Source: Amphiscolops sp. MND2022 (taxonomy: Eukaryota). Taken from it: a DNA stretch of 64,000 bases. Below are positions 31,024-64,000 of the stretch, piece after piece. The stretch is from the NCBI GenBank assembly GCA_964187785.1, contig OZ076409.1:98394001-98458000 (forward strand), read 5' to 3'. A program made the position numbers and the translations under genes. The notes under the pieces were generated by a model. That model was not told where the DNA came from. It did no database searches and saw only the letters and a list, made by a program, of their open reading frames with translations. The first letter of the stretch is position 1. Each line of letters starts with the position of its first letter.

Positions 31024-32095
31024 TTATTCCCTCATTGGAAACTTCGAAAACCCTTGGAACACCGACAAAGGAAAATCTACAAGTTCTTCTCCAGTCAAAA
31101 GTGTCAAATCGAGAGCAGTTATTGCCTTTTTGACGGTGTGCCCGAAAGGCAATGCAAGCCTCCACTTCCTGGCCTCAAGAAGTTTCATCAGCAGGTCCAA
31201 ACCATAACGGTCAAACCACTGTCTGACAAAACCTTCACCAACACCACTACAGAATAGTCCAAACATACGATTTGCTCTTTTCGAATCAGCAACATTTACC
31301 TCTTCTCATCCTAAACAAGTGCTCATTGGCCAGTTCCATCAGAATTGAAAAAACGTACAGTGAGCACAATGTGTGCACAGAGGGGAGGCTGAATTACAAC
31401 ATCTCCAGGCTGTGCTAGATGGTAGCGCAATCCACGTATCAGCCTTCTTTCTTTCCTGTCCAGCTGTTTTGGCTCTTTCAGAAATCTATACAACGTTACG
31501 AAGCTTTCGATTCCCATGAGAAATTTGGATGAAGCAGTATTGATGGCTATTATCCAAACTTTCAGACCTGACTCTAATTTAGCGATGCTTCCACCTCCAC
31601 CCCATTCGATATGTGCAGCTGTGAACCAAGGTCCCCTTGCAGCCAAAAGAGCCTTGGAACGAAGCACAACGTTGTTCGGAGGAGGAAGGCAATGAACAAA
31701 CTTGTCAGCCAATTCAAAGAGTACGTCAAGCACCCTTTGAAACCAGGATTATCATTGCCCACACTCGAATGATGAACAACTGCTTTTGCTTTGTCGAGGA
31801 AAGTTGCAAATAGAGTTGCACCCCTATTCCACGCAGATTTCGCATCTCCAACTAAATTACAGAGCTTGCTTGCTACAGGACTCCGAAAGGTCCAAGTTGG
31901 AAAGCTCTCCTTCCAGTTGGTGATCGCACTGAATACCAGAAGAGGAATGATTCATCTCTTCCTCCAAGGCAAGCAACCCCGAAGTTCAGCGATCGCGAAC
32001 AGTTCTTCAACCCTAACTTCATTTTCGATCAATTCTACCGGAGGCACCTCTTCACTTTCGCCTCCCTCCACACCCTCAAACATTTTACTCATCAT
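31024..32095 (-). pseudogene. JmjC-domain (Fe(II)/2-oxoglutarate dioxygenase, KDM2/KDM7-like motif) gene, antisense inside the BEL element
   Basis: WFTAAHIEWGG...SGLKVWII...QPGDVVIQPPLCAHIVLT gives T, HxE, K(+17) and distal H. About 350 codons reconstructed over stops and at least two frameshifts. Confidence 0.82.
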
Positions 32096-36226: not shown

Positions 36227-36426
36227 NNNNNNNNNNNNNNNNNNNNNNNNNNNNNNNNNNNNNNNNNNNNNNNNNNNNNNNNNNNNNNNNNNNNNNNNNN
36301 NNNNNNNNNNNNNNNNNNNNNNNNNNNNNNNNNNNNNNNNNNNNNNNNNNNNNNNNNNNNNNNNNNNNNNNNNNNNNNNNNNNNNNNNNNNNNNNNNNNN
36401 NNNNNNNNNNNNNNNNNNNNNNNNNN
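36227..36426. other. Assembly gap (200 N)
   Basis: Run of exactly 200 N, typical of a scaffolding join. Confidence 0.99.
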
Positions 36427-51700: not shown

Positions 51701-53607
51701 CCCGGGCCGAAAAGCAATTGGAAGCCGGTGGGTTTTCAAAATTAAGCGACACGACGACGGAACTATTCAAAAATTCGAGACTCGTTTCGTAGCCCAAGAG
51801 TTTTCGCAAGTTTTTGGGGAACGATTACGATGAAATTTTTGCGCCTACTGCCAAACTTTCTACCTTGAGGATTTATTTTGCGCTCGCTGCTTCTTGGTCG
51901 ACATTTGTTTTTCAGTTAGACGTCCGTTCAGCCTTCCTCAATGCGAACTTGAGTGATGAAATTTATATAGAACAACCAGAAGGCTTCGCGCAAGCGGGGG
52001 CTAATGGTGAAACACTTTATTGCAAGCTTCAAAAATGCCTTTATGGTTTAAAGCAAGCAGGGAGGGAATGGAACAAAACTTTAACCCAGTGGTTTTTGAA
52101 GAATGAATTTATACAGTCTGCCGAGGATCATTGTCTTTTTCGTTGCGATGGGACTAATGGTTCCCTACTTTTTGTACTAGCTTGGGTCGACGACATTTTG
52201 TACTTTTCAAACAACGACAAAATGCTGCATGATTTCAAGGCGAAACTCAGCGATGCATACAGCATCGATGATCGTGGGAAAATGACTTGGTTTTTGGGAT
52301 GCAATGTTAAACAGTCACGCGGTTGCAATTTTCTTAGTCAGCGGTCATATATAAAGGATATTTTGCGCAAAAGTCATATGTCTGATTGTAAACCAGTTAG
52401 TACTCCAGCTATTCTCCATACGAAACAGTCTAAATCGGACTGCCCTATCGAAGGTAGTGAAAAGTCACTTGATATTTGCGAACAGAAACAATATCGTAGC
52501 TTAGTTGGAAACTTAATGTATTTGTCCGTTGTTAGTCGCCCCGATATTTGCTTTGCTGTCTACAACTTAGCACAATTCGTGTCAAATCCTGGTAAAGCTC
52601 ATTGGTGTGCATTGAAAGACCTTCTCCGTTTTCTCAAGGGCACCGAGTCTCTACCTCTTGTGTATAAACGCTCTGAAAATCTCGAACTTTTTGGTTTTTC
52701 GGATTCCGATTGGGCCACCGACAAGGACGATCGCAAGTCAACTTCGGGTTTTTGCTTCAAACTAAGTCGTTCTGGTTGTGTTGTCTCTTGGGCGTCCAAA
52801 AAACAAGGGTGTGTGGCATTTAGCTCTTGTGAAGCCGAGTATGTTTCGTTGGCTTTGGCTGCACAGTCCATTTGCAAGGCTTGCTCACATTCTTCTGCTT
52901 GATGACGATGGACACGCCTGTTCTGTTGTGTGGTGACAATCAAGGGGCACTCGCACTGGCCAGCAACCCTGTCGCCCACAAACGTGCTAAACACATAGAA
53001 ACCCGACACCACTTCATCCGTCAACTGGTTGAGGACAAACGCATTCAACTGTCTTATGTCTCCACAAAAAACAACTTGGCTGATATCTTCAGCAAGAACA
53101 TACCCAAGCCTGCCTTCAATGAGCTCTCATCGCAACTCTTCGTCATTCAGCCACCTCGATCAACAACTTAACCCTTGCCCCCCTCACAACTCAATTATTT
53201 TACATTACTCATTATTGTGTTTATGTTATCACTGGGACTATGACGACTTCCAGCTTCTCTTCAACCGATGGATTGAGCCCTCTCATCCGCTGCCTCGACA
53301 CGACAGATGGTCAAGCACAGTGGTTCGCCATCATCAACCAACAACAACCCTCGGAGTCTCTCATCGAGCGGGGGTGTTAGAGATCGATGAAGGTCGAAGG
53401 ACCAATAATGGTCAACCATCTCAGACTATACCAGACTGAACTAATTTAGTATATTATTGTTGTTTGTAAACATGTATCTGTTATTTTATCTTCACTTGAC
53501 TGAATCACTTCATCAACTCACAACACAAAATAAAGTATTGGCAATAACCACTCTTCACCAATCTTCCGACAACCCAGCTACGACCAGAAGGACCCCAGGC
53601 CCTAATA
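48778..53607 (+). mobile_element. Ty1/Copia retrotransposon 2 (complete outline, frameshifted)
   Basis: 5-bp TSD GAGTT (48773-48777, 53608-53612); 5' LTR 48778-48894 (internally deleted); 3' LTR 53375-53607; PBS CGTTATGAGCCCAG; PPT GAGCGGGGG. Confidence 0.93.
49171..53171 (+). pseudogene. pol: Copia-2 gag-pol fragments
   Basis: CMCCGKSGHKQATC; VIDSGASSH (protease); WHHRLGH..CEVC; RSDNGKEY...SERRWR (integrase); QLDVRSAFLN, AWVDD, FSDSDWA, KHIETRHHFIR. Confidence 0.92.
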
Positions 53608-53650
53608 GAGTTGGCTTAATTTTGTGGTCACTTGGCGTAAAATTTTTGCG

Positions 53651-56376
53651 TGGGAAAGAGTACATTTCCAAGTCTTTTCGAAGTTTCTGTATATCAAACC
53701 GAATCAAACGTGAGCATACTGCCCCTTATTCGCCTCATCAAAATGGTGTGAGTGAACGTCGCTGGCGAACAACAGTCGAAATGACTCGCTGCATGCTAAA
53801 AACAGCAAAACTCGGCAATGAATTTTGGGTTCGTGCCTTGCACACTGCTTTTTACATTTCAAGCCGTTGCCTCACAGTTAGTTTACCAAAAGGTAGAACG
53901 CCCTTCGAAATGTGCTTTGGTAAAAAACCAGATCTTTCCAACTTGAAAGTTTTTGGATGTACTGCTTTCAAACACATTGAAACGCATCAAGACAAACTTT
54001 TCGATGAAGCCACCAAAGAAGTTTTTGTTGGTTATTCTGAGGATTCCGAAGCATACATTTTGTACAATCCTTATTCTAAAAAGACTTCGTTTTCTCGCAA
54101 CGTCTCCTTTGATGAGACTTTTTTTGATTTTTTTTGCAGCGCACCCAAGTCAAAACATCCGAGCATTTGTAACCGAAAGGCCGGCACCGAAACAAGTTTT
54201 GACTGAAACACAGAAACATTTTTGCGAAAAGTCTTCAGTTCCTATTTTACCGACTGAAACATTGAATGATTTCGAAACTGAAACAACACCTTCCCCCGTT
54301 GATGTTGTTTCATCTGAAAACATTGATGCCAATGAAAGTAGTGCTTTTTTGCGGTCTCGAAGTGGGAGAGTTATCAAACCTTCTGCGTATCTAGATGACT
54401 ACGTTCTTTTAACGGATGACATGGATGAGAATCTAACTTATCGTGAAGCAATGATGTCATCGCTTAAACGCGAATGGATCGAAACTACTCAAAAAGAGTA
54501 CAATGCGCTCATTGAGAACAAGACCTGGGTGCTTTGTCCGCTTCCCCCGGGCCGAAAAGCAATTGGAAGCCGGTGGGTTTTCAAAATTAAGCGACACGAC
54601 GACGGAACTATTCAAAAATTCGAGACTCGTTTCGTAGCCCAAGAGTTTTCGCAAGTTTTTGGGGAACAATTACGATGAAATTTTTGCGCCTATTGCCAAA
54701 CTTTCTACCTTGAGGATTTATTTTGCGCTCGCTGCTTCTTGGTCGACTTTTGTTTTTCAGTTAGACGTCCGTTCAGCCTTCCTCAATGCGAACTTGAGTG
54801 ATGAAATTTATATAGAACAACCAGAAGGCTTCGCGCAAGCGGGGGCTAATGGTGAAACACTTTATTGCAAGCTTCAAAAATGCCTTTATGGTTTAAAGCA
54901 AGCAGGGAGGGAATGGAACAAAACTTTAACCCAGTGGTTTTTGAAGAATGAATTTATACAGTCTGCCGAGGATCATTGTCTTTTTCGTTGCGATGGGACT
55001 AATGGTTCCCTACTTTTTGTACTAGCTTGGGTCGACGACATTTTGTACTTTTCAAACAACGACAAAAAGCTGCATGATTTCAAGGCGAAACTCAGCGATG
55101 CATACAGCATCGATGATCGTGGGAAAATGACTTGGTTTTTGGGATGCAATGTTAAACAGTCACGCGGTTGCAATTTTCTTAGTCAGCGGTCATATATAAA
55201 GGATATTTTGCGCAAAAGTCATATGTCTGATTGTAAACCAGTTAGTACTCCAGCTATTCTCCATACGAAACAGTCTAAATCGGACTGCCCTATCGAAGGT
55301 AGTGAAAAGTCACTTGATATTTGCGAACAGAAACAATATCGTAGCTTAGTTGGAAACTTAATGTATTTGTCCGTTGTTAGTCGCCCCGATATTTGCTTTG
55401 CTGTCTACAACTTAGCACAATTCGTGTCAAATCCTGGTAAAGCTCATTGGTGTGCATTGAAAGACCTTCTCCGTTTTCTCAAGGGCACCGAGTCTCTACC
55501 TCTTGTGTATAAACGCTCTGAAAATCTCGAACTTTTTGGTTTTTCGGATTCCGATTGGGCCACCGACAAGGACGATCGCAAGTCAACTTCGGGTTTTTGC
55601 TTCAAACTAAGTCGTTCTGGTTGTGTTGTCTCTTGGGCGTCCAAAAAACAAGGGTGTGTGGCATTTAGCTCTTGTGAAGCCGAGTATGTTTCGTTGGCTT
55701 TGGCTGCACAGTCCATTTGCAAGGCTTGCTCACATTCTTCTGCTTGATGACGATGGACACGCCTGTTCTGTTGTGTGGTGACAATCAAGGGGCACTCGCA
55801 CTGGCCAGCAACCCTGTCGCCCACAAACGTGCTAAACACATAGAAACCCGACACCACTTCATCCGTCAACTGGTTGAGGACAAACGCATTCAACTGTCTT
55901 ATGTCTCCACAAAAAACAACTTGGCTGATATCTTCAGCAAGAACATACCCAAGCCTGCCTTCAATGAGCTCTCATCGCAACTCTTCGTCATTCAGCCACC
56001 TCGATCAACAACTTAACCCTTGCCCCCCTCACAACTCAATTATTTTACATTACTCATTATTGTGTTTATGTTATCACTGGGACTATGACGACTTCCAGCT
56101 TCTCTTCAACCGATGGATTGAGCCCTCTCATCCGCTGCCTCGACACGACAGATGGTCAAGCACAGTGGTTCGCCATCATCAACCAACAACAACCCTCGAA
56201 GTCTCTCATCGAGCGGGGGTGTTAGAGATCGGTGAAGGTCAAAGGACCATTAAAGGTCAACCATCTCAGACTATACCAGACTGAACTAATTTAGTATATT
56301 ATTGTTGTTTGTATACATGTACCTGTTATTTTATCTTCACTTGACTGAATCACTTTATCAACTCAAAACACAAAAT
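53651..56376 (+). repeat. Tandem duplicate of the Copia-2 3' part (INT-RT-RH and truncated LTR 56220-56376)
   Basis: Near-identical to 50805-53531, offset 2845-2846 bp. Confidence 0.95.
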
Positions 56377-56549
56377 CATTACAAGACACAACTTTCACGA
56401 GCCTCAAAAGTTTATTAAATATCCTTAAATGCTCCACAAGGGAATTTTCACTGGCCCCTAATGTATTATTTTTTGTATTATTATTACCTATTTGTATGTT
56501 TTAACTTTTTCGAAAATTTAAGGATTTTTAATATTTGGTGAAAACGGAG

Positions 56550-57149: not shown

Positions 57150-58839
57150 TCAAGCTGCCAAGGAGGTTTTTGTGTTTTTCGAGATTAACTCGCGATAGTT
57201 TTCATAGTCCTCGTAGTTTCCTCTGTGTCCTTGAACTTGAATTTTGAGGGCTTCAAAAGCGAGACTGGTTTTTACTTTGAACCGCACCCCCAAGAGGACA
57301 TGATTGAAAAACTTCTCAGCATCCGGCCTGGTTTCAAGGAGATCCCATTTCTTACCGAGAATTTCATCAAACACTTTGTTTCCATGCGATCCCCGCTCCT
57401 CGTTGATAGTGAATTTCTGCCAATGGAAGAAAACTAATGAAATACAATTATAAAACAAACGCTTGATGAAGGTTTCATGTATAGTCTTCAGATACAAAAT
57501 TGCTGAAAGTTATGAAAGCCCTTGGAGTTGCAACGCTGGATTAAAAAATTGTTCAAGATTTTCAATGCCCTGGGAAGTTCAATAATTACACTCCACAGTG
57601 TTTTCAAAGACTTGTTGTCAATGATGCTATTAACTACTTTGACAATTAGCATATGCTTACCGAATCTCTTGACGATTCACAGCCCAAAACTTGCCTAATG
57701 TAAAATGGCACAGGACTGTATATTATTTCTGTGTGGCTGATTGTGTCGTAAGAGAGGAAAAGTTCCCGTTTGATGGCGGAAAACACTGTGAAAACTTCAT
57801 CAACTGGGTGCAAGTTAGGGTTCCTCACTGTGAGTTCTGGGGATTTCATATAATTGATTTCCTGTTGCTTCTTAAGTGATTGATTGGGGTCTACTGACAG
57901 TCGAACTTCTGTGGCTGGCAGTCCAATGTATCTCTTACTCCCGTCTAAAGTTACTTCTGCCATCGCGTGCGCCTCCCTGCGGTCAAAAAAAAGCTTTCGT
58001 ACAACCCCCGTCTGTGACAAGTCTATTACAACACGTGATCCTGCTGCTAGTATTCCGTTCGTAGTGGGAACAAGTGTCAGGCTAACGGTTTCGTCAGATC
58101 CGCACAATGCCCGCAAAATGTCTCCAATGTTGATCTTCGACAGTTTCTCTTTCACTACAGCTTTCACTTCAACTTTCAATTTTTTGGCAACTGGGATTGG
58201 TATCATTTCTTCTTCGTCAGCTATTCCTTCTTTTTGCCAGTCAGAGTTCCTCAACTGGTTGTACGAAATATAAAACTTCTCCACATTGGAGCAAATCAGC
58301 AAAGTTTTTCTAAACCTATCATTGATTAGCACAGTTCCAGATTTCAAAACTGATGCTTCTTGGATCATTTGTTTCATCTCCCAAGGCTCCATAATATCAC
58401 CAACCGATGGCGCAGTCGACCCAACAAAATATACTATATCGCCTTTTGCGAATTTTTCCTTAGTGTAATCCAGTTTGTAATCAATATTGTGTCGTCTGGG
58501 AAATAGAACTTCTTCAAGAGCTTTCCTGACTGGCCAATTTTCAAGATGAACTTGGGGGTCACAAAAAAGAACCCGAACAGGGTCCTTGTTTTTTCCCCAG
58601 CGCGTAAAATTAACACGAACATGATTGGTGCCTTCAAAACCTTCGATTTTAGCCTCCTCCCAGATTTGAGTGTCAGGATCCAAAGCTTGAACGACTGGCT
58701 TAGTCTGGAAGAAAACATTGGCAAAAAGCATTGTTGATTGTTCGAAATTGATTGACCAATTTGATTCGAGGTAAAGCGAAGAGTGGAAAATGAAATTTAC
58801 GGTTTCTGAATGCTTTTAAATTGCGTCTTCGCAAGTCAT
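57150..58839 (-). CDS. Spliced gene for a Tudor/chromo-barrel-like protein, possibly pseudogenised
   Basis: Main exon 58704-57661 begins VQALDPDTQIWEEAKIEGFEGTNHVRVNFTRWG (Tudor/MBT-like barrel). Phase-0 intron GTAAGC(57660)...TTGGCAG(57417) joins exon 57416-57150. Putative first exon 58839-58801 has an in-frame TAA. Confidence 0.68.
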
Positions 58840-59073
58840 AATTTGCCTCAATTCAGTTCTGGTGTTAGACTCAGATTTTTGATGATGTTGCAATGTGAGT
58901 CCGTTGACACCAAATGTAAATCTACGGCACCTGTTTCTCTTTTCGATGAAAGCGTTAACGCGGATAAGCGTATAAGAATGTAGTAAGCCTCAAATGTGAA
59001 TGTTGCTAATTTTGGTAAACGTTTTCCCATCTATTTCGAAATCCTATTCCTTAAAAGCGGTCCCGGTATTACA

Positions 59074-62000
59074 ATGAGTTATTGCAATGAGGAGATAATT
59101 CTGAAAAAACACCTAATCAATTTGCCAGAAGGCCTGTATGTTGATTTATCGTTATTCGACTACTTAGCAGAAGAAACAATAAATGACAAGCAAAGGAAAG
59201 TGAAACCAGCAATCACTTGTCTCTTGAATGGCACAAACGTTCAATTCACCGATGTTTTCATCAGTGCAACGCGCAATGAGACAGGTAGACGAGCAAAATA
59301 CAATGCTGTGGTATTCAAAATTGCACTCTTGCTTGTCTTTAAAGGATTCACTGGCCTATCGTGGACAGATCGTCGCCGACGCTTTGTTGCACACTTCTTC
59401 GGCCCAGAATTCATTCCAGACGGAAAGCCAGTAGAAAACAACTCGGAAATTAGCAAATTCTTACCGAAACTGGAGAATCGCGAACCACCAATAGCAAAAA
59501 ATTCGGATTTACACGAGCCCGCTTTTTGTACTAGTAGCAATCATTTCTGGAGTGATGTGTTGAATCAAATGAACAATCGAGATTTGGAAATTGGGAGTTT
59601 GATTCAACATTTGAAAAATAAAGCCTATATTGCTACCGAAAAAAAAACTTGTACAACGGCCTAATTATTTGAAACAAATCATGAAAGCACTGTTCCCTTC
59701 GAGATACACCCATCAATTCATGGAGCATTTGTATTTGATCAAGAAAACTGGTAATGTTGTTGATTTGGTCGGTTATCTCAAGACTTTATTTGACTTACAG
59801 GGCATAAGAAATGATCAGTTAGTTCCCAGTGTTACAACATTAAACAAATTGTCAAATCCTCTACATTGCTTTTATTACAACATATTCCAACCGGAGAAGA
59901 CCTACTCAGGTTTTAGAGCCGATTTGATTACCTTAGTGAGAACCTCTCACTACCTTCTGACGGGAATTGAATCGTTAGAAGGTGTTGCAGTTGATCTTTG
60001 GGGTGACGGGGTTGAAATTGGGAACTCGGAGTGTACGAGAATGGTTTTCCGATTTCTTGATACAAAAGGGAAAATCAGTCCACAATCTTCAGATGCATGT
60101 TTCACATTTGCTTGCTTCAAAGGTTTGTGCAAAAGTGATTGAACGTTGTTAGGAAAAATGAATACATTCTATTCAACTAAAGTGTTCAAGAAAATCAATG
60201 GTTTAAACTAAGCAAAGATGTTAAACTGAAAACGAGTTGCGTAGCAATATTAACAAACTATAATGGAATGTTTTCAAGCGCTTTTAATGTAGTGGATAAA
60301 TCTATTGTCTATCTCAAGTTTTTACATATGTGAATACAGTTGTGAACAACATTTGTTGTTTTAAACGAGTCCTTTTTGTTTTTCAAACGAACTGTAGAAC
60401 CGCAGTCGATGCTTTATATTCAACTAAACTGATTCGAAAACTGTTGATATATTTTGAATATGAAAAAGATCTATAGATTCGTTTGAATTATGTGAGTTAA
60501 TTGACCATACACTTGCGAAGGAAATTGTGCATTAAACGGTAAAAAATTGGAAAAACGGAAATAAGTCCCGAATTAGCTCGAAATCAGCTGTTTGTAACTT
60601 TCTCAAATTTTGTCCCGGAAAATCTTTTAAAAAATATCAAGAAACTTTTCTCACATTAATCTCATTGGTTTACCAGCCTCAATAAAGAAGTAAATACTTG
60701 CATTAATATAAGCAATTCGCTAGAACTTTTCTTCAAAAACATGCTATATCAAATATTTTTGTACCAAAGATGCAGATACGAGACTGTTTTGCACATGTTT
60801 GCAGGTCATGATAGCAGATTTGCAATGGAACAAAACCTCGGCCCAACACAAGTTGGAGTTCAAAAGAGTGGATGGCTTTACCAGCAGACAAAGACGCTGG
60901 TCGAGGACTACAAAGTGAAACTGACGTTGTCCGGCGATTAGCCATTTGTAATGCGATTGGTTAATGGTGACAACGTTGAAGACGACTCCAAATGCGCAAT
61001 CTATGTTGGCAAAAAGTCGTCAATTGGTTTTGACGTTGAAGATGGAAAGAAAGTTTTCCAACCTTTTTTGTCAACGACAGTTGATCCCAAAACGAAGAAA
61101 CGGACAACGCTGAATATACCCTGGCAGGTGTTACCGTCAACTTCCCTGGTTTATCTTGACGACATCCGAAGAGTTTGCGTTGACACTTGCCATGGTATCA
61201 CAAGAATGGTTGAGAATGACTTGCAAAAGTTTTGCAATCTACTAATTGAGACCCGCGGGAAAACAATTTACACCGTTTTGAACCTATTCGAATCCAATTT
61301 AACCGAGAGAGGAGTGAAGGAGCCCAGGTTCAGATTTAATATCAATACAAGCAAAAACGGACCAACTAGTTGCAATTCTGTGTCTTTAAGTGGAAAAGAA
61401 GCCCTGCTCGCGATTGCTCATCGGGACGAATTTGGAAGCGACAGTGGAATACAAAGCAACCTTTTTGATAATGTCTTCAAAGAAAACGAGTACTTAGTGG
61501 GCCATCCGGCTAACCTAGAAACTCTTAAACTGTGTCACAAGCATGAAGTATTACTTGAAGACAAAACAAATTGGTATTTGATGTCAAAGTACGATGCCGC
61601 AGAGCTATGGCGGCAATCCTTGAACAATATGAACATTATTCTCAGAGGTTCGAAAAACGGTTTCCCTCAAAAACTCATTGATGAATACAATTTCTGGGCG
61701 GAGACATATTATCATATCTCAATGGCTTTCTTTGGCGAAGTTACGCCATATAAAGTGAAAATCCTTCTTGTTCCCAAATTGGTCGAATCGGGTTGTATTC
61801 GGTCACCTTGGGACCACTTAACCGAAGCAATGGAGCACTCGAATCATCGAGCACATCAATTCTACCATCAAAAGACAATGCGCGGGGGAGGTAAACTACT
61901 TCACGTTGATCCCATGCTTCAAGATCTGGTTTTGTCGTTTTTTCGATGTTATATCCACAGCAAGCAACAAATCGCTTTTGAAGAGTGTATGATGCAGCTC

Positions 62001-62702
62001 CGCAGTATCTTCCGGCCAATTCCAACTTTCCACATAGATTACCTATGGATATGTAGGAAAACAATTAAAGCGAGGACTATTCAAATCGATACACCTTGCG
62101 AGAAAGATTCGATTTTTCTAGGCCTACGTTTCACCGTATTTGGAGATTTTCGAAAAGCTAACCTAACGCAGGTTCAAGTGAACAAGATGATTCTCGAATG
62201 TGGCGGCCTGGTAATGACCCAAGATGCCCTGAAAACACTGACTGAAAAGCACTCCCATCTACCGTTTTGCTATGTTTTAGTACAAAATGAAACAGATCTT
62301 AGAATAGCAACTGGAGAACCAGGGGTTGGCCGACCAATGGAGAAACGTGAAAAAATTGTCGAAAAAAAGGAAAGAGCTTTAAAGTTAAGATGTTATGTAC
62401 AATCGGGAGTTGTTTTTTTGAACGTAAAGTTTGTTGTTGATTGCTTGAACAAACGTACTTTGCTTGATCCAGCTAACTATGAAATAAAACCAGGAAATGA
62501 CATACCAATAGTGCCCATTCGTGACATGAAGCCCTTGTTCAAACGACAATGCGAGGCCAAAGAAATAATTGAAGGAGTTACCAAAGGCCCGTTTGTCCTT
62601 ATCAAAGAATTTCGGAAGCAAAACTACTCAAACCTCACACAAGACATCGAGAAGATATTTGGCAAAAGACATACAAAAAAAGATGAGACGTCATCGTTTT
62701 GA
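59074..62702 (+). pseudogene. RAG1/Transib/Chapaev-related DDE transposase with C-terminal BRCT domain (about 980 aa reconstructed; one frameshift, one stop, one intron)
   Basis: VDLWGDG (D, 60005), TLSGD (D, 60936), CVDTCHG (DxxH), TPY..., TEAMEHSNH (E, 61833). Phase-1 intron 60123-60804 gives FACFKG|HDSRF. Poly-A frameshift near 59640; TAG at 60939. BRCT at about 62110-62490. Confidence 0.8.
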
Positions 62703-62929: not shown

Positions 62930-64000
62930 AAAGTCGATGCACACATTAGTCTCGATTACTGTTTAGGAGAGTCGATGCACATATTAGTCTCGATTACTAT
63001 TTAAGAAAGTCGATGGACACATTAGTCCTAATACTGTTTAAGAAAGTCGATGCACACATTAGTCTCGATTACTGTTTAAGAAAGTCGATGCAAATATTAG
63101 TCCTACTACTGTTTAAGTAAGTCGATGCACTCATTAGTCTCCAATACTGTTTAAGAAAGTCGATGCACACATTAGTCTCGATTACTGTTTAGGAGAGTCG
63201 ATGCACATATTAGTCTCGATTCCTATTTAAGAAAGTCGATGGACACATTAGTCCTAATACTGTTTAAGAAAGTCGATGCACTCATTAGTCTCCAACACTG
63301 TTTAAGAAACTCGATGCACACATTAATCTTAAGACTGTTTAAGAAAGTCGATGGACACATTAGTCTCGAATAGTGGTTAAGAAAGCCGATGCACTCATTA
63401 GTCTCCAATACTGTTTAAGAAAGTCGATGCACATATTAGTCCTACTACTGTTTAAGAAAGTCGATGCACTCATTAGTCTCCAATACTGTTTAAGAAAGTC
63501 GATGCACACATTAGTCTCGATTACTGTTTAGGAGAGTCGATGCACATATTAGTCTCGATTCCTATTTAAGAAAGTCGATGGACACATTAGTCCTAATACT
63601 GTTTAAGAAAGTCGATGCACTCATTAGTCTCCAACACTGTTTAAGAAACTCGATGCACACATTAATCTTAAGACTGTTTAAGAAAGTCGATGGACACATT
63701 AGTCTCGAATAGTGGTTAAGAAAGCCGATGCACTCATTAGTCTCCAATACTGTTTAAGAAAGTCGATGCACACATTAGTCTCGATTACTGTTTAAGAAAG
63801 TCGATGCACATATTAGTCCTACTACTGTTTAAGAAAGTCGATGCACTCATTAGTCTCCAATACTGTTTAAGAAAGTCGATGCACACATTAGTCTCGATTA
63901 CTGTTTAAGAAAGTCGATGCACATATTAGTCCTACTACTGTTTAAGAAAGTCGATGCACTCATTAGTCTCCAATACTGTTTAAGAAAGTCGATGCACACA
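62930..64000. repeat. 37-38-bp satellite with higher-order structure; continues beyond the window
   Basis: Unit AAGAAAGTCGATGCACACATTAGTCTCGATTACTGTTT; 339-bp (9-mer) repeat at 63223 / 63562; 113-bp (3-mer) repeat after about 63760. Confidence 0.95.

Follow-up and report, generated by a model that had tools for sequence, protein, structure and literature searches.

Transposons are usually viewed as targets of host chromatin silencing, and some of them encode a second protein that works with the transposase. En/Spm needs such a protein, and its TnpA binds subterminal 12-bp repeats; in the RAG1-RAG2 pair, the PHD finger of RAG2 reads H3K4me3. The giant Plavaka elements of red algae (EnSpm/CACTA; 17-19 kb) carry an accessory cassette, PAG1-3, whose genes encode a SET-containing protein, a 2-oxoglutarate (2OG) oxygenase beside tandem arrays, and a protein of unknown function (bioRxiv 10.1101/2025.02.11.637652); HarbingerS elements carrying a SET gene and Helitrons with captured SET and 2OG genes are cited in the same study. 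Fungal KDZ, Plavaka, and ESTA transposons carry TET/JBP dioxygenases, and the CMCT clade (EnSpm, Mirage, Chapaev, Transib, Plavaka, and others) is described as having CA...TG termini, 2-5 bp target duplications, and RAG1-like profiles (PMC12730594). Here, we analyzed a stretch of 64,000 nucleotides from Amphiscolops sp. MND2022 (GCA_964187785.1, contig OZ076409.1, positions 98,394,001 to 98,458,000, forward strand; referred to as the window), in which a minus-strand gene, referred to as the partner, lies head to head with a transposase gene.

The partner gene is part of a recently active 19.4-kb cut-and-paste DNA transposon and is not a host gene. The element extends from window position 56377 to approximately 75735, about 11.7 kb beyond the window end. 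Its distal part was walked using an ENA assembly from the same species, in which one contig holds the window's own copy plus its Copia flank, and a genome search with the distal 3 kb located the right end of the window copy at C1:98469735 (window-equivalent 75735). The element measures 19,359 bp in the window copy and 19,385 bp in the assembled copy. Similarity among 11 copies starts exactly at window 56377, where the element opens CATTACAAGACACAAC and the flanks are unrelated; at the right end, all copies stop at the same point, position 1112 of the query L080:12500-15500. With CATTAC at the start, the ends (CATTACAAG...CTTGTAATG) form a perfect 21-bp pair of terminal inverted repeats, CATTACAAGACACAACTTTCA. 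A prior reading of the window (the sequence-only reading) had been unable to confirm any terminal inverted repeats; the pair exists, and its right member lies about 11.7 kb past the window end. The terminal 29-mer of the left end occurs 137 times in the genome (reversed control, 0), and no right-hand inverted copy of this 29-mer was found near known copies because just the terminal 21 bp are inverted.

Insertion has left 2-bp target duplications in 13 of the 15 copies for which both flanks are available. These comprise four of five full copies (AT, TT, GG, and AT) and nine of ten short derivatives that keep both ends (272-1672 bp); one derivative, 1.67 kb long, arose by internal deletion and has the two ends joined, at 99.7-100% identity. 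The copy at L071/L080, which lacks a duplication (CA versus TG), was set aside, as the terminus of a long terminal repeat (LTR) retroelement, TGGGTC..., abuts its right terminus exactly (L080:13612 onward; G000:C4:9284679 onward). Another copy, at C2:50523770, likewise runs on into TGGGTC. For the window copy, a paralogous uninterrupted Copia LTR at window ~53531 represents the empty site and reads ...CACAAA-AT-AAAGT. The surrounding Copia-type LTR retrotransposon occupies window 53316-56376, with integrase and RVT_2 open reading frames (ORFs) at 53457-56016; the element sits inside its 3' LTR, and its 5' LTR (53316-53531, 95.8% identical) gives the empty-site sequence. At least 14 full copies are present at 99% identity or more, in addition to older subfamilies and many short derivatives. 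The shared borders, inverted ends, 2-bp duplications, and near-identical copies and derivatives together identify a recently active cut-and-paste transposon.

The partner moves with this transposon. A six-frame search of the 1.07-Gb genome with partner exon 1 recovered 12 copies with open frames at 98-100% identity, older copies at 75-88% identity, and several more distant families at about 30%; a search with the transposase exon gave a mirroring picture. The head-to-head layout of partner and transposase recurs at at least 15 young and 8 older loci (23), and in 14 of the 15 young loci the gap between the matched partner and transposase stretches is 2216-2220 bp. As the sequence-only reading had proposed, the gene is mobile and co-occurs with the transposase in the same arrangement; it is not single-copy with host synteny but multi-copy, accompanying the transposase copies.

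The element had been proposed to be a two-gene transposon, and this proved too small an inventory: it additionally carries SET and JmjC genes. In window orientation, the left end is followed by the partner (minus strand), a 342-bp spacer, the transposase (plus), and a first array of a 38-bp unit. Beyond these lie a multi-exon JmjC gene (minus), a 184-bp repeat (3.8 copies), a second 38-bp array, a 376-codon ORF (plus), and a SET-domain exon (plus) that closes the coding region about 900 bp short of the right terminus. The 38-bp unit is AATACTGTTTAAGAAAGTCGATGCACACATTAGTCTCT, and its direct arrays, of about 36 and 25 copies, flank the JmjC gene in every copy. Both the SET and the JmjC genes are present in all eight ENA copies examined. 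Pfam recognizes both domains (SET, E value 3.7e-11; JmjC, E value 1.8e-6). The sole PDB match of the SET exon, which contains the NHS and DYG motifs, is KMT5A/SETD8 (E value 2.6e-10). For the JmjC exon, C. elegans KDM7, PHF8, and KDM7A come first, ahead of KDM2A and PHF2 (E value 1.1e-16), and the exon keeps the H-x-D and distal H residues. KMT5A/SETD8 is the monomethyltransferase of histone H4 lysine 20 (producing H4K20me1), and PHF8/KDM7 enzymes remove H4K20me1 and H3K9me2. A JmjC-like stretch at window 31024-32095 was compared as a possible copy of the element's genes and is not a copy.

The partner gene was predicted to be spliced, with phase-0 splice sites, and an intact two-exon ORF confirms this: from the sequence and the ORF table, two intact minus-strand exons encode a product of 445 amino acids. 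The GT donor lies at 57660/57659 and the AG acceptor at 57418/57417, with phase 0 at both junctions. This splice model is supported because three intronless homologues (P0051, P0052, and P0053; 426-470 amino acids) read across the junction into exon 2, and exon 2 is homologous to the C-terminal parts of these three proteins and of P0068 and P0073. Four sequencing runs contain the stretch, all of them as DNA contigs, and the model is a homology-based one. The start codons of partner (58731) and transposase (59074) are 342 bp apart, farther than the approximately 235 bp given at first, and the divergent layout is kept in all copies and in a distant family, L091. Contigs with partner homologues in other data sets are 1.5-3 kb long. 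On two of these loci (L082 and L083; ENA ERZ23877643 and NCBI GCA_003704795.1), the 426-amino-acid intronless homologue P0051 is arranged head to head, at a distance of about 230 bp, with an ORF rich in Ser, Thr, and Pro and styled like the N terminus of the element's 376-codon ORF; the ORF upstream of P0051 shows no relationship to transposase exon 1.

Sequence comparisons indicate that the partner is under strong purifying selection. For partner exon 1, the ratio of nonsynonymous to synonymous substitution rates (dN/dS) is 0.13 at a dS of about 0.5, comparing the young family with copies about 13% diverged in protein; the transposase exon gives 0.15-0.23, and the constraint on the partner is thus at least as strict. 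Two other families in the same genome, L090 and L091, share 26-35% protein identity with this family (33-35% for the transposases), and both have a partner homologue upstream of the transposase on the opposite strand. A SET homologue is present in both families and a JmjC homologue in L091; gene order varies among families. Selection on the partner and the repetition of the pairing in two diverged families bear out the suggestion that the partner belongs with the transposase. The gene set has stayed with the transposase over a long period, and recent passenger capture is therefore ruled out.

An exhaustive HMMER search of 1.8 billion cluster representatives, a library without names or annotation, returned 33 partner relatives, and a search of 5.8 billion sequences added 4, for a total of 37, all unannotated; the full-length relatives are 25-33% identical and 370-470 amino acids long. 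These homologues bear on the proposal that the element captured the partner from a host and carries it as a mere passenger without a role for the element. Large DNA transposons do capture host genes, and the SET gene here resembles cellular KMT5A and the JmjC gene cellular KDM7. However, none of the homologues on long contigs resembles a host gene, 37 of 37 lack annotation, and both the strong purifying selection and the fact that families sharing 26-35% identity have inherited the gene set along with the transposase run counter to a passenger, which we regard as very improbable.

We next consider the transposase. When spliced, an intact copy yields a 985-amino-acid transposase, and its alignment to intronless homologues is colinear across the exon junction. 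Two defects are private to the window copy: an A-run at 59639 is one A longer, and a C-to-T change at 60939 gives TAG where the majority have CAG; most other copies keep a 684-codon open frame. Pfam detects BRCT_2 in the C-terminal tail (E value 2.5e-4 to 3.4e-4, under the Pfam cut-off); across all partner and transposase pieces, it otherwise returned a chance KH_5 match only, with no RAG1 and no En/Spm family. PDB sequence searches with the transposase exon and with the transposase family profile gave nothing meaningful, and none of the 36 family members in a large protein database is annotated. The catalytic core of one family member was modeled with AlphaFold 2 (AF2; predicted local distance difference test [pLDDT], 79.5; predicted template modeling score [pTM], 0.77), and the model was compared with the PDB using Foldseek. 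The top 45 matches are all RAG1, HzTransib, or BbRAGL (amphioxus RAG1-like), with E values down to 6e-6 and TM scores of 0.33-0.48 over about 550 columns, and Hermes ranks far lower. The modeled core fold is thus RAG1/Transib-like.

Across the transposase family, D-x-WGDG, G-x-DSR, a C..D..H block (CVDTCH at 474), and E-x-SNH are retained. The C(2)C and H(3-4)H spacing of the CMCT clade was not matched exactly, and the element has the 5'-CA...TG-3' termini and a duplication within the 2-5 bp range of that clade. Transib elements have 5-bp target duplications and CAC ends. Because of its 2-bp duplication and CA...TG ends, the element fits the wider CMCT clade rather than Transib/RAG proper, and from the 2-bp duplication we infer a placement nearer Mirage or CACTA. 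A RAG/Transib-type element, with which the locus had been likened, is not what we found: the duplication is 2 bp and not 5 bp, the ends read CATTAC, and the partner is not a Kelch-PHD protein.

The AF2 model of the partner, built with a 20-sequence alignment (pLDDT, 80.6; strand pLDDT, 87-96 in the barrels), predicts three barrels (residues ~10-70, 93-165, and ~209-282), with residues 169-198 forming a disordered linker and helices at the C terminus. The N-terminal motif VQALDPDTQIWEEAKIEGFEGTNHVRVNFTRWG, recognized in the sequence-only reading as barrel-like, lies at residues 14-46, inside a predicted five-stranded barrel. The segment KFAKGDIVYFVG, offered there as a possible second barrel, marks the beginning of the second predicted barrel; the third, also delimited more narrowly at about 213-272, is an addition. 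Fold comparison was carried out with Foldseek and VIA-align, including a second comparison per domain. Foldseek against the PDB placed the tandem-Agenet H3K9me2 readers AGDP3 and ADCP1/AGDP1 first, followed by FMRP, MBT repeats, and the SETDB1 triple Tudor, with SPT5 KOW arrays also present; AlphaFold DB and ESM Atlas structure searches agree. Barrel 1 is matched by the TDRD3 Tudor domain (Z score 5.3; root mean square deviation [rmsd], 1.4 Å over 54 residues) and also resembles the UHRF1 tandem Tudor, the AGDP1 Agenet, and the MRG15 and MSL3 chromo-barrels. Barrel 2 is matched by the Tudor domains of PHF1 (Z score 5.3; rmsd, 1.6 Å over 50 residues) and 53BP1 (range of Z scores, 4.9-5.3), and barrel 3 by the BAH domains of EBS, AIPP3, DNMT1, and BAHCC1 plus PWWP and Tudor domains (Z scores, 5.3-7.0).

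With three modeled barrels whose best matches are Tudor, Agenet, MBT, and BAH readers, the Tudor-like fold proposed from the motif holds at the level of prediction. We describe the predicted fold as Royal-family-like, which is not proof of family membership; because the Z scores are moderate and other small barrels match too, it does not single out methyl-lysine binding. In 17 aligned sequences, W24 is conserved in 17, position 42 is aromatic in 16, and W45 is conserved in 16. By motif, W24, F42, and W45 fall at Tudor/MBT cage positions, and the first cage position is aliphatic (L17). Language-model look-alikes of the partner that have Tudor_3 or Agenet domains score just 0.80-0.83. The partner defines an unannotated protein family linked to RAG1-fold transposases, and this family bears on how such transposases gain chromatin-reading helpers.

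The partner is a selected accessory gene, and on balance we lean towards its product being a reader-like protein that binds chromatin on behalf of a histone-methylation kit encoded by the element. Binding to histones as such we put at slightly short of an even chance. Under this proposal, the partner would recognize a methylated histone tail and would thereby recruit the transposase or the enzymes of the element to chromatin with the appropriate mark. Methylation of H4K20 or H3K9 would be the candidate mark, given that KMT5A writes H4K20me1 and that PHF8/KDM7 erase H4K20me1 and H3K9me2. The partner would be coexpressed with the transposase from the shared divergent spacer, and the benefit to the element could be anti-silencing, self-regulation or self-limitation, or target choice.

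Several observations weigh against the reader-like role. For partner exon 1, Pfam returns no family, reader or otherwise, even at an E value of ≤1, and no PDB sequence matches it. Z scores of 5 to 7 can be reached by a common small-barrel arrangement, and the structural matches include SH3 and CAP-Gly domains as well as the SPT5 KOW arrays. Motif position is the basis for assigning the putative aromatic pocket, and the gene structure is backed by homology, the sequencing runs being DNA contigs. In the window copy, the transposase is broken (the partner gene is intact), and in L090 the SET gene lies between partner and transposase, indicating that a shared promoter is not universal.

The nucleic acid-contacting KOW, SH3-like, and PWWP barrels among these matches, together with the missing reader-family hidden Markov model match, would also suit a nucleic acid-binding accessory protein analogous to En/Spm TnpA, which would bind the 38-bp arrays, the ends, or RNA and aid synapsis or regulation. 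CACTA-type elements classically employ a second, DNA-binding protein, and two arrays of an identical 38-bp unit are found in every copy. We nevertheless think this role fairly unlikely, as no short repeated motif occurs within 700 bp of either terminus, the conserved W/F/W positions coincide with Tudor and MBT cage positions, and the coinherited SET and JmjC genes point to histone methylation.

The RAG1-like fold of the transposase, the Royal-like fold of the partner, and the head-to-head arrangement maintained in the young family and in L091 raise the question of whether the partner is an obligate, bound cofactor of the transposase, as RAG2 is to RAG1, with a methyl-lysine pocket that steers insertion to marked chromatin. 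Such a cofactor appears improbable to us. Nothing points to contact between the two proteins, and in L090 they are not encoded next to each other; no preferred sequence is evident in the target duplications or the flanks, and the observed insertions lie in other repeats, such as the Copia LTR. In addition, a writer and an eraser suggest chromatin modification and not mere site choice. Complex prediction with the partner and transposase exon 2 returned a score of 0.00 with poorly folded chains, which is evidence neither way.

A more far-reaching version of the reader-like role is that an animal lineage keeps an H4K20/H3K9 kit (KMT5A-like writer, KDM7/PHF8-like eraser, and triple-barrel reader) with a RAG1-fold, BRCT-tailed transposase. 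In this version, the reader, coexpressed via the shared divergent promoter, would be the chromatin-recognition subunit of the transposase and would correspond, independently and on a Tudor basis, to the PHD finger of RAG2. We consider the whole of this picture unlikely; if the reader were a transposase subunit, the element could rewrite or choose chromatin for its own spread. Together, the writer, eraser, and reader-like genes aboard suggest that the element itself acts on chromatin. With copies at least 99% identical and most of them with open frames, the system is directly testable.

The coordinates of the features are given in Table 1. An older copy about 87% identical, L034 (G000:C2:77966602-77971362), has its left 185 bp reverse-complemented at positions 1146-1328, directly after the transposase 3' end, giving a rearranged element with long inverted ends and, on that side, no genes other than the partner and the transposase. 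This "185-bp TIR" was considered as the element end and rejected as a feature of one rearranged older copy. Window 36227-36426 consists of 200 N, an assembly gap or masked stretch.

Table 1 Features of the element in the window copy (window positions; positions past 64000 are window-equivalent)
Feature	Position	Strand	Description
Left copy of 2-bp target-site duplication (AT)	56375..56376	.	Right flank of the same copy begins AT
Left terminal inverted repeat	56377..56397	+	CATTACAAGACACAACTTTCA; its reverse complement is the right terminus
Partner gene exon 2	57150..57416	-	88 codons plus TGA; C-terminal domain
Partner gene intron	57417..57660	-	244 bp, GT..AG, from sequence; bridged by intronless homologues
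Partner gene exon 1	57661..58731	-	357 codons; ATG at 58731; three predicted SH3-like barrels, then helices
Divergent intergenic region between start codons	58732..59073	.	342 bp; candidate bidirectional promoter
Transposase exon 1	59074..60122	+	First catalytic-type motif DLWGDG; extra A at 59639 is a frameshift in this copy
Transposase intron	60123..60804	+	Phase 1, GT..AG
Transposase exon 2	60805..62702	+	GHDSR, CVDTCH, and EHSNH motifs; BRCT-like tail ~62103-62483; premature TAG at 60939-60941
First 38-bp tandem array	62930..64000, on to ~64300 past the window	+	L080:790-2156
Second 38-bp tandem array	70764-71612		L080:8579-9516; found in every copy, 8.1 kb beyond the stop codon of the transposase

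Among described systems, RAG1-RAG2/ProtoRAG shares with this element a RAG1/Transib transposase core fold and an element-encoded protein with a chromatin-reader-type domain. The genes are divergent here and convergent there, and the partner is predicted to consist of three small barrels and helices, unlike the Kelch propeller with PHD of RAG2. The target duplication is 2 bp versus 5 bp in RAG-like elements, the ends read CATTAC versus a CAC heptamer, and two additional chromatin-enzyme genes are present here. En/Spm, with TnpA and TnpD, belongs to the same broad clade and likewise has a second element-encoded protein alongside the transposase; however, En/Spm-type subterminal repeats are absent from these ends (700 bp by each terminus), and neither protein has an En/Spm Pfam match. 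The fungal carriers of TET/JBP enzymes are also DNA transposons, some of them CMCT elements with CA..TG ends and 2-5 bp duplications, with an eraser of epigenetic marks as an accessory. The fungal enzyme acts on DNA methylation, whereas the enzymes here are of the histone-methylation type, and a reader-like or SET gene is not reported for the fungal elements (PMC12730594).

The red-algal Plavaka elements are cut-and-paste transposons of the same 17-19-kb class and broad clade, with a cassette that has likewise been long inherited: SET and 2OG-oxygenase genes travel with the transposase, and the 38-bp arrays here recall the arrays beside the Plavaka 2OG-oxygenase gene. The SET protein here is KMT5A-like and without the N6-adenine methylase, unlike that of Plavaka, and the oxygenase is a KDM7/PHF8-type JmjC protein versus a ParB-2OG fusion. 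The third protein is a predicted triple Royal-like barrel; the transposase has a BRCT-like tail, and the host is probably an animal, as BEL/Pao-type neighbours suggest. No animal element that combines a KMT5A-like SET gene, a KDM7-like JmjC gene, and a gene for a Tudor-like protein, and no description of the present element, turned up in our searches of the open literature. The element thus differs from described cassettes in its enzyme types, its BRCT-tailed RAG1-fold transposase, its triple-barrel partner, and its probable animal host.

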